Assembly: GCA_021613535.1 (NCBI GenBank)
Contig: CP075495.1
Span: forward strand, 10,602,001-10,666,000
Source: Adineta vaga
Lineage: Eukaryota; Animalia; Rotifera
Length of the DNA stretch: 64,000 nt
Direction: 5' to 3'
In this document: positions 36,660 to 43,469 of the stretch, piece after piece
Numbering within the stretch: position 1 is the stretch's first letter
Layout: every line of letters begins with the position of its first letter
Position numbers and translations under genes: made by a program
The notes under the pieces: generated by a model
Databases searched by the model: none
What the model was told of the DNA's origin: nothing
Seen by the model: only the letters and a program-made list of their open reading frames with translations

Positions 36660-37238
36660 GAGAAATTGTCGCTCAATCTTTGAAGAATTTCTAGTCTTTT
36701 ATTTTTCATTCTATTGTGTATCTTTTGTCTCTATGTATATTTTCAATGACAGTGATTTTCATATATATATATTTATATTCAAGAAAAGAAATAAACGATG
36801 CGTTTTGGTTTTTGTATGTGAATTCCGGGAAAACAGCTTGTTCTCTTCATTACTTGGAATACTCAGTGTTTATATTAACAAAAGACAGAATTTTAACGAT
36901 AATATTATTAAATTAATATCAACGGTAAATTCCATGATTAATCTGACTGATTCAAAATCATTCGTTACCCGATCGTGACAATCAACGTAAAAAAATTGAA
37001 ATATACAATTCATTGTAGTGATGCACGAAAATAATTTAATCTTGAAGGTGGTCAAAGTATAGAGACAAAGATTGCTAATTAATTCACATTATGATAGTCA
37101 TATTTATTTTGATTATACTTTACTAGTTAGATAATCATCTTCGTCTTTCTCATAACATTTTTCTCGAACTGTTAAATATCTAACTTTATGTTTTATAATT
37201 GATACAGTTGTTCGTTTACATGTAGATTGCTGTCAAAA

Positions 37239-39444
37239 ATGAAAAACGACATTTTCCCTTCGTATGTTATTTATCTTATTGTATTAATAAGATTGATAAA
37301 AGGAGATCTTGTGAACGATTTTCGTCCACCTGCTACTCCTCTTCTTCTACTCAATCCAACGATTCAAATTTGGTCAAAAGGAGATCATCTCAATGATGTA
37401 CCAACAACACATTGGATTGAAAATCAAAATATGTCGTTAGTTGGTCTTGTTCGTATAGATAATGGAAGTAAAATATTAAGATTTATGGGTGTAACGAATG
37501 AAAATATACCATCTATGAAACAAATTCAAAGACGTGTACAACCAACACAAACTTTCTATATATTTCAAAGTGAAGAAATCGAATTAAATGTAACATTTAT
37601 TCAACCAGCTTTCATTCATTCTTTGGAACTATCTTCATTACCTATTGGTTATCTGACACATTCGGTTCGCTCACTTTCAACAAAAAAAGAATATACAGTA
37701 CAAGTATATATTGAAATTTCCATGGATTTGGTTGTCAATTCATTAGTTAATGATACAGTTGTTTGGGAACAAACACGGTCAGGAGAATATCGTTGGCAAT
37801 CGTATGATCATGCACCCTTTCAAACCCATGGTGATCAAATAAAACCTGATTGGGGCTATTTTTATGCAGCATCAAGATCGATATTTCTTCGTGATAGTAC
37901 ACAGACGAATGCATCATTATGTCGACAAGCTTTTATTCATGGAAATTTTCATCTACCTAAACGAGATGAAAGTCAAGGACCACGTTCAATTCAAAATGGA
38001 TATCCAGTATCTTCATTTCTTTTTGATTATGGTTCAGTTAATCAGGATGCGAATGTCTATTCATCGTTTCTTGTTCTCTTCCATGATGAACAATTATCGA
38101 TTAATTTCTTTTCAAATTATCAACGACCTTATTGGACAAAACTCTATTCAAACGTACAACAATTACTTGATATTGCTTTTCAACGTTTTGATGAAATTCA
38201 ACAAGAAGCAAATGAATATGATACAATGCTCATTCAACGATATACGAATGTAGCAGGTATATAATAATTGTTTGAATGAGATACTAAGAACGTTTTTGTT
38301 TGTTTCATAGGTGATCGTTATGCTACATTACTCTCACTTGTTCATCGACAAGTAACAGGAGCTTGTGTTACTGTATGGGATGAACAACGACAACAAGCAT
38401 GGTCCTATATGAAAGAACAAAGTTCAGATGGTGATGTGAGTACTGTCGATGTGATTTCACCTGCAGCACCATTTTTTCTCTCGCTTGGACCTGAATATTT
38501 ACGGCGACTTTTACTTCCTTTACTTGCTTATGCAAATAATGAAACATATGTACAATATACATTACCTTGGGCACCTCATCATCTTGGTGATTGGCCAGTA
38601 TGTTCGATTCTTCCGCAAGATCAAGAACAAATGCCGATGGAAGAAACAGGTAATATGTTGATTCTATTAGCAGCAATTGCACAAAGACAGAATGAACAAA
38701 TTGAATATCTTCGACCCTATGCACACCTTCTTCAAAATTGGGCACAATATTTAAACGATTCGTTACCCGATCCTGAAAATCAGCTGTGTACCGATGATTT
38801 TGTACGTATTGTTGTGAATGATTTCAATAGTAAATCAAAATTCTAAACATATTTCACTTTCTATTTAGGAAGGTTCATCAGCACATAATGCTAATTTAGC
38901 TTTGAAAGGTATAATTGGTCTCGGAGCTTATTCACTACTTCTTTCCATGGGTTTGGGTAATCAAAGTCAAGCAGATCAATATATGAAGCAAGCAATTGTT
39001 TTTGCTCAAGAGTGGGCAAAATTAGATTGGAATGGCATCGATCATTTTCGACTTGAATATGATGCTAATAATTCAAGTTGGTCACAAAAATACAATATGT
39101 TTTGGTCATGTGTCATTGGATTAGATGACATACTTTTTGCAGATTTAAGAGTACAAGATATTGAATTAGCGTATTATCAAACAAAAATGAATCCATACGG
39201 TTTACCATTAGATAATCGAGGTGTTCTCGCGAAACTTGACTCATCGATGTGGATTGCTGCGATGATACGAGATAATACGGAACAACGGCAACGAATTGTT
39301 GATAGCCTTTATACATTTGCACATTCAACACCCACACGAATACCTATATCTGATGTGTATGATACGACAACAAATAGCGCAATGTTTTTTACTGCTCGAC
39401 CAGTTCTTGGTGGTCTTTCTGCTCTTGATCTTCTTTCAAAATGA
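37239..39444 (+). CDS. gtaA: Secreted glutaminase GtaA-family protein (DUF5127/DUF4965/DUF1793 architecture), non-metazoan type
   Basis: FRPPATPL, DWGYFY, MKEQSSDGDVSTVDVISP, MPMEETGNMLIL, DPENQLCTDDFEG-x4-NANLALKGIIG, WSQKYN, YGLPLDNR, FTARPVLGG. Introns at 38257-38310 and 38802-38868. Confidence 0.9.
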
Positions 39445-40139
39445 TTCTCTATTTTCATCTAACTATCTGAAAAGAATCGAACTTATATAAAACATACAAT
39501 GATGCGAGTTACTGAAATAAACATATGCTCTTCTTTGTCTTGCTTTTACGTTATCTCTTCCTAGTTATAATTATCAACTATGACACGAAAAACACCGAAT
39601 GAAAGGTTGATAAGTGTTGACACAATGAAAGACGAAACATCTGTACGGAGATCTAGTACTCATCGTTTCCATTTATTACTTCAAAGATTTTTCATCATAC
39701 AGTTTTATACATAAACTTCTACTCTTATAGACTGACGTAATTGAAAAGAAAATGTCGAATTATGTAAAAACTAACATTTTTATTTGACTTTTTGAAAAAG
39801 AAAGATTTCTCAATTGTAGTATTGAAATGATAGATAGTATTTTATCTGTCTGTCACTATACATATATTTACATTGAATCATTTACTAAATTTAGTGATCA
39901 GTCTGGTGAAAGAACGAGATTTTTCAACAAGACAAAAATGATATGTCACTAAGGTTTGCAAACATTTAATTTTTGATAACAAAAAACATGGTTGAATCGA
40001 TGACATCATTTCATTTATTTCGGAGATATTAAACTCTAACCTGTTGAGAAGAAATTTTTTTAAAATATTATGGGCAATTTTACAACAAAAAGTAAAGAAT
40101 ATATTCAAGCATCGTAGATTTTAATTAATCTTTTCTCAG

Positions 40140-42345
40140 ATTCTCGACATCTTCACGAAGAAACAGAGTCGGTATCGAACAGTATATCAAATCGTCGAAG
40201 AACGAATTCAAGTACAAAACAGGTATATTTGAGAATAATCTCCAAAAAAGGTATTTTGGTCAATAAAATATTCATTCAATATTATAGATATATAATTCAT
40301 GTACGATGTGTCTTTGTTCATTTGGAATACAAGAAGAACGTATTCCTCTGGAATGTATTAATATAAAGTGTGCTCGATTGTATTGCACTCAATGTGTAAA
40401 TTGTGTACAAACACATAATGGAAATAATAAGCGATTTCGTTGTATGTATTGTTTACTTGAATATCCTGCACATAAAATACCGACAGAAAATCAGATACTA
40501 ATTAAACAATTATGGACTAGTATGATTGTAAAATATGGTATTCGTTATACGAGTCATTTACTTTCCAAAACTTTAAACCAAAATAACATGATTGATCTTT
40601 GGTGTGATATTGAATGTCGACGACGTCATTTAGTTAATCTTATATCTACTCTTGAACGATTTTCTCGATGGACTCAAATACATCATATCATGAATGAAAC
40701 TCATATCATGGCTGACAAATTATTAGATATTGCCATGCGACTTCAAGAAGATCCTATTGCAAATATACATACATTACAAAATGAATATCAAGAAATTATA
40801 TCAACATCCGATCATAATAATAATAATAATAATAATGATGATATGATTGGTTCACATTATATTCGTATATGTGAACGTTTACTTGCTGATATTTCCGATG
40901 CTGAATTCTATCGAGCATTTACTAATACTCATGCAAAAATGATCGAATGGAATTGTGCACTTGCTTCGAGTGACCAATTTCAACCACAAGTTTCTGATTT
41001 ATTTACTGCCATTGAAACTGATCTTCAAGAACAATGTTCTCATCATCGTCATGGAATTGTACGAGCTAAAATTGGTATTATTGGTTACACGTGTGTAGGT
41101 AAAAGTACGATTCTCAATCGTTTATTAAGTATTGAAGATTTAGCGATGGATACATCATCACCTGTGCGTAGTATAAAAAGTACTTATTATCAATTACAGT
41201 TTGATCGAAAAGAACCATTACCATCTCCTCATAATCAATCGAAAACAACTGCTGTAACACTTGTAGATATTCAAGGTCATGATAAAGATACACTGACAGT
41301 TGATAGTCAACTTTTACCAGGCAATTATTTAGATGAAATTCGTAAAGCTGATTGTGATATTTATATATTAGTATTTGATGAAAAACTTCGTTATGAACAA
41401 CATGGTTGGATAAGTTTTATTGAAGAAACATTGAAACGTCAATGTATTCTTGTACGTTCAAAAGTTGATATTGAATTTCTTGCAAAATATCGTGAACGAT
41501 CAGGTTTATTCTATGGTAGTAGTACACCAGCACAACGTGCTTGTTATACACCAACAATTCTTGAACAATTAAGATTTGATAATGAAATGGAATCACATCA
41601 AGTTTTCTTGACAGCTGCTGATTATATGCCAGCAAGTTCAGATGCAGCAATTCTATTAAACGATCAATCATTTGATATGACAATATTATTCGATGAATTA
41701 GGTCGCCTAGCAGCCGATGCACGTAATCGTCGTATTCATACATTAGCAATGCGAGCTGCTGCTCGTGTAATCAATATATGTTTTCGTCGTGGTTATGTTT
41801 TAAATGTATTTAATTATAAGATTGGTGCTGGATTAGCTGCTATTATACCTTTTGGTGATCAATTACCACGTTATTTAGCAAGAGATCATATACGACAAGC
41901 ATTTGGTATAACAAAAGATTTTCGTCAATATTTATTACAATTTCGTTTAAGTATTGATGAAGGTTATTTACAAACATCAACCTTAGAAAATTGTGTAACG
42001 GCAACAATGATGAAAACAAAGGTTAAGAAAGGTTCATTAGGAGCAGCTGTTGGTGGTGCTTTTATGGCTGGTGCTCCATTTTCTGATGATATTCTTCGTG
42101 CAGCTGCACCTACTGCCGTTGCTTTGACAGGAGGTGCACGGATTGCTCTTACTGCTAGTACTGCTATTGTAGGTGTAGTTATTTCCGCTGTTGTTTGTGC
42201 TTGGTCAGCTGTAAATAGTGGCAAACATATATTTAGTTATGTCAATCGATTATGTGACGATCTTATTCTCGTAAGCAATCCATTAATAACTACATTGATT
42301 GATATAAACAGCAGAAAATATGATCAAACTCATTCAAATCAATGA
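40140..42345 (+). CDS. Cross-brace zinc finger (RING/PHD-like) fused to an IRG/IIGP-like P-loop GTPase with a hydrophobic C-terminus; true start not resolved
   Basis: C-x2-C-x14-C-x4-C-x4-C-x2-C-x15-C-x2-C begins at 40300. G1 GYTCVGKST, G3 DIQG, G4 VRSKVD, then AGLAAIIPFGD...RQAFGI. An upstream exon (40140-40221) joins in frame via an intron ending at 40287. Confidence 0.8.
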
Positions 42346-42803: not shown

Positions 42804-43469
42804 ATGATGATCATGTCCACACCAGGACGAAAACGTGTACAACCAATTTTACTCGATGATGATGATGATATGGAATCTACCAGTGCAGATATATTAATTT
42901 CTTCATCTTCGTCAACGAGCAATACCAATACTAATGTTCAAGATCTTCCAACGTCTTTGCCTTTCGTGTCAGAAACATCTTTAAAACAACCAATGAAAAA
43001 AAATCTCTACGTTCCATTAAATTTCGATGAATTATCTCATATACGAAATGCTCAAACGAATAGTGAATTTGCTACATTACTTTATGATTTTAAATTATAC
43101 AAAAATGTTGTTAATGGTCATATATGTTTTTCATGTCGAAAAGTGAAATTTTCTCTCCTACAACCAGGTAGTCGTTGTACAATATGTTTACAACGTATTT
43201 GTTCCAAATGTCAACGAAGAATTACTTATCGAAATGATAATATTTGTTTTGTTTCATTAAATTTACTTCGACGTTCATCAATTACATCATTTCCAACGGA
43301 TATGACAATGAGAAAAAATGAACGAACTGATTCAGAATCATCATCATCATCATCAACCATAACAACAACAAACAAATGTAAAAAATCACAGACGAAAAGA
43401 CTTTCAAATAATACGTTTTCATGTTGTGTTGATTGTTTCATATTATTCGATCCAGCCTCACTTGTGTAG
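42804..43469 (+). CDS. Short Spire-like protein (Spir-box-like segment + modified FYVE finger only)
   Basis: LNFDELSHIRNAQTNSE...LYKNVVNGHICFSCRKVKFSLL...CTICLQRICSKCQRRI...CVDC matches the Spire C-terminal module. Single exon with an in-frame TGA upstream. Confidence 0.75.
   Translation: MMIMSTPGRKRVQPILLDDDDDMESTSADILISSSSSTSNTNTNVQDLPTSLPFVSETSLKQPMKKNLYVPLNFDELSHIRNAQTNSEFATLLYDFKLYKNVVNGHICFSCRKVKFSLLQPGSRCTICLQRICSKCQRRITYRNDNICFVSLNLLRRSSITSFPTDMTMRKNERTDSESSSSSSTITTTNKCKKSQTKRLSNNTFSCCVDCFILFDPASLV

Follow-up and report, generated by a model that had tools for sequence, protein, structure and literature searches.

A bdelloid rotifer protein joining a RING-fold zinc finger to an IRG-related GTPase domain and a hydrophobic C-terminal region

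Background

The IRG GTPases of vertebrates are interferon-driven destroyers of pathogen vacuoles, and for this they depend on separate E3 ubiquitin ligases. Concerning proteins that carry ligase and GTPase in one chain, RNF112 has a RING, a large GTPase and two helices, one predicted to be transmembrane and one amphipathic, and performs GTP-dependent membrane remodelling; its auto-ubiquitination neither affects the GTPase activity nor is affected by it, and is efficient only with the RING and the GTPase portion in one chain (PMC12012479). The other protein known to combine the activities of an E3 ligase and a GTPase is TRIM23, which has a role in immunity and autophagy (PMC12075517). Here we analyse I4U23_009080, a plus-strand gene of the bdelloid rotifer Adineta vaga, found in a window of 64,000 nucleotides (C2:10602001-10666000 of the A. 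vaga genome; positions below refer to this window unless another sequence is named). Its product is a hypothetical protein of 720 amino acids (P0001), the current database labels being 'hypothetical protein' or 'G domain-containing protein'.

We show, from sequence comparison and predicted structures, that one bdelloid protein joins a RING-fold finger, a helical region, an IRG-homologous G domain, a hydrophobic region and a terminal helix. An initial annotation, made from the DNA letters, had proposed such a chain and had regarded it as a candidate innate-immunity effector; its structural interpretation was largely confirmed, while the immune interpretation is unsupported. The fusion had not been recognised there as a described family, and in agreement with this our literature search returned no paper on rotifer IRGs or on a RING-IIGP fusion.

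Relationship of the G domain to IRG GTPases

By sequence and by predicted structure, the nearest relatives of the G domain are the IRG/IIGP proteins and no other family, as had been supposed from its motifs. When a profile of 21 family members was compared with the PDB, Irgb10 (1.9e-9), Irgb6 (3.6e-8) and Irga6 (3e-5) came out on top, with an alignment spanning the whole G domain. The full-length model obtained with AlphaFold 2 (AF2; predicted local distance difference test score, pLDDT, 77; predicted template modelling score, pTM, 0.79) was searched with Foldseek, and the best 36 matches were all IRG chains, followed by mitofusins. Aligned by hhalign to 12 IRG units, the family reached a probability of 99.6 % (E 9.7e-25, 272 columns), with residues 265-585 lying on IRG columns 16-303 of 395, that is, through the stalk helix into the helical domain; the AAIIPFGD...RQAFGI segment, read initially as IRG-like, pairs in this alignment with the IRG motif PIPGLS...FGLDD. 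The conserved IIPFGD loop (residues 545-561) has low pLDDT in the AF2 model. We also compared the family profile with 1.84 billion protein representatives and found 239 proteins at E <= 0.001. Among 20 sampled matches below the family itself, 19 were PF05049 proteins (from fish, amphioxus and unnamed sources), and the remaining one was a double-MMR_HSR1 GTPase, which we judge to be EngA/Der-like.

The G1, G3 and G4 motifs noticed initially are all intact and in place (Table 1), and those typical of IRG proteins are found: the P-loop is G-x4-G-K-S at residues 301-308, and S-K-V-D is present at residues 426-429, replaced by T-K-V-D in paralogs. In Pfam, I4U23_009080 matches MMR_HSR1 above the cut-off (33 bits), while PF05049 (IIGP), the profile proposed as a check, gives 17.6 bits with the whole protein and 20.1 bits with the G-domain piece, under the cut-off of 24. 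The same profile is passed by relatives (P0036 with 54 bits, P0090 with 26.7 bits) and matched by 15 of the 21 family members at E <= 0.01, the best at 1e-13; because P0036 passes it at 54 bits, the family is safely IRG-related. A language-model atlas returned IIGP (0.81/0.80) and DUF697 (0.77), all below the counting level, and DUF697 was dropped as Pfam did not find it either. A G domain of the dynamin superfamily (mitofusin, atlastin, RNF112) was rejected as well, with Dynamin_N at 12 bits against a cut-off of 27 and mitofusins ranking below all IRG chains.

In a quick maximum likelihood tree, built with a single weak outgroup and containing several long branches, the rotifer family forms a clade (Shimodaira-Hasegawa-like approximate likelihood ratio test, SH-aLRT, 99) outside the clade of the canonical IRGs plus three RING-IIGP proteins (P0209, P0230 and P0231), a clade that has an SH-aLRT of 90. 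On these sequence grounds we file I4U23_009080 as a putative divergent sister lineage beside the canonical IRGs, and not as a canonical member.

A. vaga possesses canonical IIGP/IRG genes of its own, scoring up to 236 bits, at C1:873739-874683, C6:13450262-13451149, C6:8917921-8921495 and C3:20208611-20236687. They include a tandem cluster on C6 and, on C3, three tandem copies with identical scores.

The zinc finger

The eight-Cys pattern C-x2-C-x14-C-x4-C-x4-C-x2-C-x15-C-x2-C, reported initially, is present at residues 40-90. All eight Cys are invariant in 22 of 22 family members, at identities down to 25 %, so the pattern is not due to chance, and the eight zinc ligands are conserved in cross-brace order. 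Whether the finger was a RING or a PHD/ADD had been left undecided, and single-sequence profiles could not separate the two, since PHD_NSD (best 16 bits, in one paralog) scores about level with the RING models of Pfam. The structure models favour a RING, though the Pfam RING profiles stay under threshold. With the AF2 model of the finger (pLDDT 88), the top Foldseek match was the TRIM25 RING (TM score 0.62, root mean square deviation 2.3 A), and an exhaustive VIA search placed RING/U-box folds in 50 of the 50 best rows; PHD was absent from these 50, and the first PHD in Foldseek appeared at rank 40. A profile of the rotifer finger matched over its full length RNF4 (1.7e-4), the C4C4 RING of CNOT4 (9.5e-4) and TRIM25 in the PDB. 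We conclude that the finger adopts a C4C4-type RING fold whose inner loops are enlarged. PHD/ADD was rejected, having neither a fold nor a profile match, and so was a Zif268-type C2H2 reading: such chains were the top PDB profile matches, but they were partial (positions 21-63, via PF-x-C-x2-C), the full-length matches being RINGs.

The finger also keeps hydrophobic residues (C-x-[MILV]-C, a V/I within the central helix, C-[MIL]-x-C) at positions that we take, from other RINGs, to be contacts with the ubiquitin-conjugating enzyme (E2). In P0163, a distant environmental relative of similar architecture, canonical C3HC4 RINGs occupy the position of the finger. A complex predicted for residues 34-110 of the protein, two Zn and a UBE2D-like E2 of A. 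vaga encoded by an intronless gene (L009:1483-1950) scored 0.01, which counts neither for nor against an interaction.

Concerning E2 enzymes in general, the A. vaga genome contains 74 matches to the E2 family UQ_con, which is a large expansion. Many are intronless UBE2D-like open reading frames (ORFs) of 150-210 amino acids, several of them clustered locally (C3:19.3-20.0 Mb, C1:5.84-5.85 Mb).

N-terminus, helical region and hydrophobic tail

Orthologs from Adineta ricciae and Rotaria share the N-terminal sequence MGN[FN][TS][TAS]KNS. Its Met-Gly start, the Thr at position 6 and the nearby basic cluster are kept in the annotated ones of A. ricciae, Rotaria sordida and R. socialis, while the Met-Gly start is absent from the paralog P0036. 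The start MGNFTTK fits the consensus for N-myristoylation.

The helical linker described initially corresponds to the region between finger and G domain (Table 1). No Pfam family matches residues 100-290, and the last helix of the region aligns by hhalign with the N-terminal helix of IRG proteins. As Pfam finds no B-box in residues 1-290, and the AF2 model places eight short or medium helices after the finger and not one long coiled coil, membership of the TRIM (RBCC) family was rejected.

The Gly/Ala-rich hydrophobic helices, estimated initially at about 60 residues, form a stretch of 70 (611-680) with 17 Ala, 9 Gly and 9 Val. Its Kyte-Doolittle maximum over 19 residues is 2.35, at residues 654-672, within the one segment of transmembrane length (654-678); two shorter Gly/Ala-rich stretches come before it, separated by the nearly invariant D635, D636, R639 and R653. 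Nearly invariant in the following C-terminal helix are G680, H682, I683, F684, Y686, N688, C691, D692 and D693. The two rotifer subfamilies and the environmental relatives all have a comparably hydrophobic C-terminal segment, which the RING-IIGP group lacks. Residues 586-720 show no similarity to IRG C-termini (local hhalign E 0.21, probability 0.3 %), and Pfam has no match in residues 500-720. Because a conserved and confidently folded helix comes after it, the hydrophobic region seems more likely to be a hairpin or an in-plane wedge than a single pass.

Gene model

A word search identified P0001 as the product of the stretch, at 100 % identity. The gene has three exons (Table 1). The stretch that had been delimited initially starts at 40140, where exon 2 begins and not the gene, whose start codon is at 40070. 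We translated the exons singly, and the pieces give back the P0001 N-terminus; searches and folds were made with the annotated protein P0001. In a search of the own genome exon 2 was matched as a separate stretch (residues 7-39), and a metagenomic gene call, P0016, reads through the intron equivalent to intron 2. As had been claimed, the finger is joined to the GTPase, both lying in one uninterrupted exon, of which the long ORF 40306-42345 is the bulk.

Table 1. Features of I4U23_009080 and positions in the window
Feature	Position	Strand	Remarks
Exon 1	40070..40091	+	MGNFTTK and first base of codon 8; equals P0001 N-terminus; GT donor at 40092
Intron 1	40092..40139	+	48 nt, GT...AG, read from DNA; exon 2 carries on P0001
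Exon 2	40140..40222	+	Ser/Arg-rich linker, conserved basic cluster NRRRT; from translation
Intron 2	40223..40287	+	65 nt, GT...AG
Exon 3	40288..42345	+	residues 36-720 and stop; finger, helical region, GTPase, stalk and tail in single frame; 100 % identical to P0001
RING-fold zinc finger, residues 40-90	40300..40452	+	C4C4 type, unusual inner spacing C-x4-C-x4-C
Helical region, residues 101-290	40483..41052	+	eight helices, Asn-rich loop at residues 211-216; AF2, pLDDT mostly 80-95
IRG-type G domain, residues 291-500	41053..41682	+	
G1 GYTCVGKST	41083-41109	+	
G2 Thr334	41182-41184	+	
G3 DIQG	41266-41277	+	
G4 RSKVD	41455-41469	+	
Stalk helix after the G domain (residues 499-545), followed by conserved loop and helix AAIIPFGD...RQAFGI (41836-41910)	41683..42012	+	hhalign to IRG helical domain
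Gly/Ala-rich hydrophobic region, residues 611-678	42013..42216	+	hydropathy, composition
Conserved C-terminal helix, residues 680-719, HIFSYVNRLCDD motif	42220..42339	+	AF2 helix 665-719, pLDDT 83-93

It had also been noted that the ORF misses the first Cys pair of the finger. This holds only for the first Cys: Met42 (ATG at 40306) lies inside the first C-x2-C, and Cys43 comes directly after it. In dozens of metagenomic gene calls for the family (P0004-P0034 and others) the start is likewise set at the Met within the finger's first C-x-M-C; prokaryote-style callers ignore upstream introns, so that database entries systematically lack the first zinc ligand.

Could the whole arrangement be an artefact, that is, a pseudogene, a mis-joined gene model or a set of chance motifs in AT-rich DNA? 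The GC content of the window is 29-33 %, yet exon 3 holds an open frame of 685 codons in DNA of 31 % GC; AF2 models the protein with confidence (pTM 0.79), the relatives compared share the annotated exon structure, and orthologs under constraint are present in at least seven named bdelloid species (see below). Such an artefact is effectively refuted by the conservation data, and we give it hardly any probability. Judged from its sequence, I4U23_009080 is a functional, intron-containing bdelloid gene.

Family, copy number and selection

All named members of the family are from bdelloids (Adineta, Rotaria, Didymodactylos), the rest coming from unnamed metagenome or run assemblies. The orthologs of A. 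ricciae and Rotaria are 77-84 % identical to I4U23_009080, and the A. vaga genome has about five loci, none in tandem. The ratio of nonsynonymous to synonymous substitution rates (dN/dS) between the A. vaga and A. ricciae orthologs is 0.11 overall, at a dS of 0.94 that is close to saturation; by region it is 0.09 in the finger, 0.16 in the helical region, 0.12 in the G domain, 0.04 in the stalk (the lowest) and 0.085 in the tail. All domains are under strong purifying selection.

The closest paralog, P0036 (C1:6536910, coding length 2,052 bases), is 48 % identical over its full length, and its match to PF05049 covers profile positions 34-311. In a second subfamily (P0079, P0126, P0217), about 90 extra residues come before the same finger and the helical region is about twice as long. 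Pfam finds nothing in these extra parts; by eye, the conserved N-terminal domain of about 90 residues might have a ubiquitin-like or PB1-like beta-grasp fold. P0079 is A. vaga I4U23_005493 (C1:17015920-17018295). A further paralog locus, C3:4807130-4809126 on the minus strand, has three TGA and one TAA inside its six-frame match and an annotated product of 465 amino acids (P0060); these stops could reflect introns or decay.

Low copy number, conserved synteny (from DEPDC5 to dynein) and uniform constraint are not expected of arms-race IRG effectors, and they bear directly on the initial proposal of an immune function. According to that proposal, a single chain would act cell-autonomously, loading onto pathogen or damaged membranes like Irga6 or Irgb10, oligomerising with GTP, disrupting the membrane with its Gly/Ala wedge and tagging through its RING. 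We found no support for such a role and consider it unlikely, even though the protein is homologous to IRG GTPases and has the GKS-type P-loop that effector IRGs carry, as well as a Met-Gly start like that of myristoylated Irga6. The RING folds closest to its finger are moreover those of the antiviral TRIM25 and TRIM23, and TRIM23 is a precedent for a RING and a GTPase in antiviral autophagy (PMC12075517). Against this stand the dN/dS of 0.11 with no relaxed domain, the high identity of the orthologs, and the few dispersed loci in a conserved housekeeping neighbourhood. The canonical IIGP genes of the same genome, some of them in tandem, look more like an expanding immune-type family than I4U23_009080 does, and the word 'GTPase' is absent from a paper on fungal infection of bdelloids (PMC11258130). 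Because of this conservative evolution, our data suggest a constitutive role, at an organelle membrane or in quality control, over that of an arms-race effector.

Proposed role

From these results we lean modestly towards a membrane-anchored RING/IRG-like GTPase, with GTP-driven self-association and an E2-recruiting RING, serving a constitutive role more than that of an arms-race effector. The protein would lie on the cytosolic face of an internal membrane, anchored by its C-terminal hydrophobic region, probably as a hairpin or wedge; in the I4U23_009080 ortholog group an N-terminal myristate with the adjacent basic cluster would probably provide further anchoring. Like IRG and dynamin-like proteins, the chain may self-associate or change its conformation as its GKS-type G domain binds and hydrolyses GTP, and the RING finger may recruit an E2, with ubiquitination of the protein itself or of neighbouring membrane proteins as the result. 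The nearest working model would be RNF112.

It should be noted, however, that several results weigh against this picture. Strong purifying selection is compatible with an immune role too. The hydrophobic region is modelled by AF2 at pLDDT <50, and its topology is a guess. In the G domain, Lys332 (in K-S-T) stands in the hhalign column of the IRG consensus Glu, so the switch-I Glu is not found; this column is that of the catalytic Glu106 of Irga6, two residues before the G2 Thr, and because Lys332 holds this position the catalytic mechanism of IRGs may not apply. As for the finger, it remains below every Pfam RING threshold (zf-RING_2 9.5-11.4 bits here and 17.9 in the paralog P0036, cut-off 27.3), its inner spacing C-x4-C-x4-C differs from the canonical C-x(1-3)-H-x(2-3)-C, and in the I4U23_009080 ortholog group its last Cys is followed by Leu, where many active RINGs carry Arg or Lys.

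These peculiarities of the finger would fit a RING-like structural or binding module without ligase activity, devoted to dimerisation or to the recognition of a partner or lipid, the protein then being in essence a membrane-anchored GTPase that serves fusion, fission or tethering as mitofusins or atlastins do. The order of helices, G domain, helices, hydrophobic region and returning helix is indeed mitofusin-like, and the RING of RNF112 has no influence on GTPase activity or membrane remodelling (PMC12012479). We nevertheless hold this alternative to be improbable, as the finger is constrained like the G domain and the environmental relative P0163 has canonical C3HC4 RINGs in the same position. 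The hydrophobic residues at the presumed E2-contact positions are conserved, and C4C4 RINGs such as that of CNOT4, which is an active E3, are among both the profile and the fold matches. We thus retain the membrane-anchored GTPase with an E2-recruiting RING as our tentative preference.

Other RING-bearing relatives

Proteins with a RING and an IRG-type GTPase were also found in other eukaryotes. One group (P0209, P0230 and P0231; L001, a Logan ERR11260131 contig) combines a RING-H2 with a B-box-like motif and a canonical IIGP domain, and is without a tail. A second (P0163; L002, ENA ERZ27313306; and P0127/P0131) carries either a pair of C3HC4 RINGs or a variant finger, together with an IPF[LG]D motif and a Gly/Ala-rich tail like those of the rotifer family. 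Word searches with P0163 and P0209 returned no named relatives.

When the quick tree is rooted, every group that bears a RING branches either at the base of the canonical IRGs or below it. This is compatible with, though far from showing, the idea that the IRG lineage has its ancestral form in RING-bearing membrane-anchored IRG-like proteins (the rotifer family, P0163, P0127, P0131 and the RING-IIGP group), to which we give little credence; equally doubtful is its corollary, that canonical IRGs may descend from a TRIM-like RING-helical-GTPase protein by loss of RING and anchor. If it were true, a single rotifer chain would still combine tagging with ubiquitin, assembly driven by GTP and insertion into the membrane.

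The family is in any case a conserved invertebrate one, in which an IRG-type G domain is hard-wired to a RING finger and a predicted membrane anchor, with canonical IRG genes in the same genome. It provides an outgroup for the origin of the IRG mechanism, and a natural test of whether ubiquitin ligation and an IRG-type GTPase cycle can be coupled in one chain.

Neighbouring genes

On the same strand, I4U23_009080 is preceded by DEPDC5 and then a glutaminase-A-like gene (37227-39444); a small Cys-rich ORF (42804-43469) follows it, and after this the gene for a dynein heavy chain. A. ricciae keeps the order DEPDC5, I4U23_009080 ortholog, small ORF and dynein. The glutaminase-A-like gene (plus strand; DUF4964, DUF5127 and GtaA_6_Hairpin, up to 153 bits) is missing from this syntenic interval of A. 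ricciae, and the Rotaria gene model P0023 merges it with the GTPase. Because the family is typical of fungi and bacteria, the gene is a candidate horizontal acquisition. The small ORF, also on the plus strand, encodes 221 amino acids, rich in Ser and Asp, with a C-x2-C...C-x2-C...C-x2-C finger, whose likeness to RIM2a_ZnF is weak (18 bits, below the cut-off); in A. ricciae a gene of 125/220 amino acids is found at its position.

Comparison with known systems

Like the IRG/p47 proteins (PF05049; Irga6, Irgb6, Irgb10, GM4951), to which its G domain and the initial portion of its helical domain are homologous, the rotifer protein has the GKS P-loop, the [ST]-K-x-D G4 motif and P-[IF]-x-G...FG[IL] after the stalk helix, and IRG chains are its best PDB matches in sequence and in structure. 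Unlike them, it adds an N-terminal RING finger and about 190 residues of extra helices, has Lys at the position of Irga6 Glu106, stays under the PF05049 threshold, and ends in 135 residues unrelated to IRG C-termini, with the hydrophobic Gly/Ala-rich tail. The family is moreover a separate clade, also from the canonical IRGs of A. vaga, and evolves slowly. The proteins P0209, P0230 and P0231 resemble it in their N-terminal RING, helices and IRG-type GTPase; however, theirs is a canonical RING-H2 followed by a Cys/His-rich stretch that to the eye resembles a B-box, they carry a canonical IIGP domain (84 bits) and lack the hydrophobic tail, and the quick tree places them with canonical IRGs, apart from the rotifer family. 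Mitofusins and BDLP show a similar succession of helices, G domain, helices, hydrophobic membrane region and returning C-terminal helix, and mitofusins are the second tier of structural matches, but they score below IRG chains in both sequence and fold, and mitofusins do not have a RING.

TRIM23 (ARD1) also has a RING E3 and a GTPase in one chain, and its RING is among the best fold matches of the rotifer finger; it differs in its small C-terminal ARF GTPase, B-boxes and long coiled coil, and has no membrane segment. Together with TRIM23, the closest in design is RNF112 (ZNF179), with the same order of N-terminal RING, helical link, GTPase with helical middle domain, predicted membrane segment and terminal helix (PMC12012479). 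The G domain of RNF112, however, belongs to the GBP/atlastin clade and that of the rotifer protein to the IRG type, a classical C3HC4 RING contrasts with an oddly spaced C4C4 one, and no sequence homology between the two proteins was detected outside generic folds; because of these differences the two fusions are independent. The rotifer family would thus be, after RNF112 and TRIM23, the third independent case of a recurrent RING and GTPase design. Both the IRG-related GTPase and the design of RING, GTPase and membrane anchor are of kinds already known, and the rotifer combination is a variant of them.

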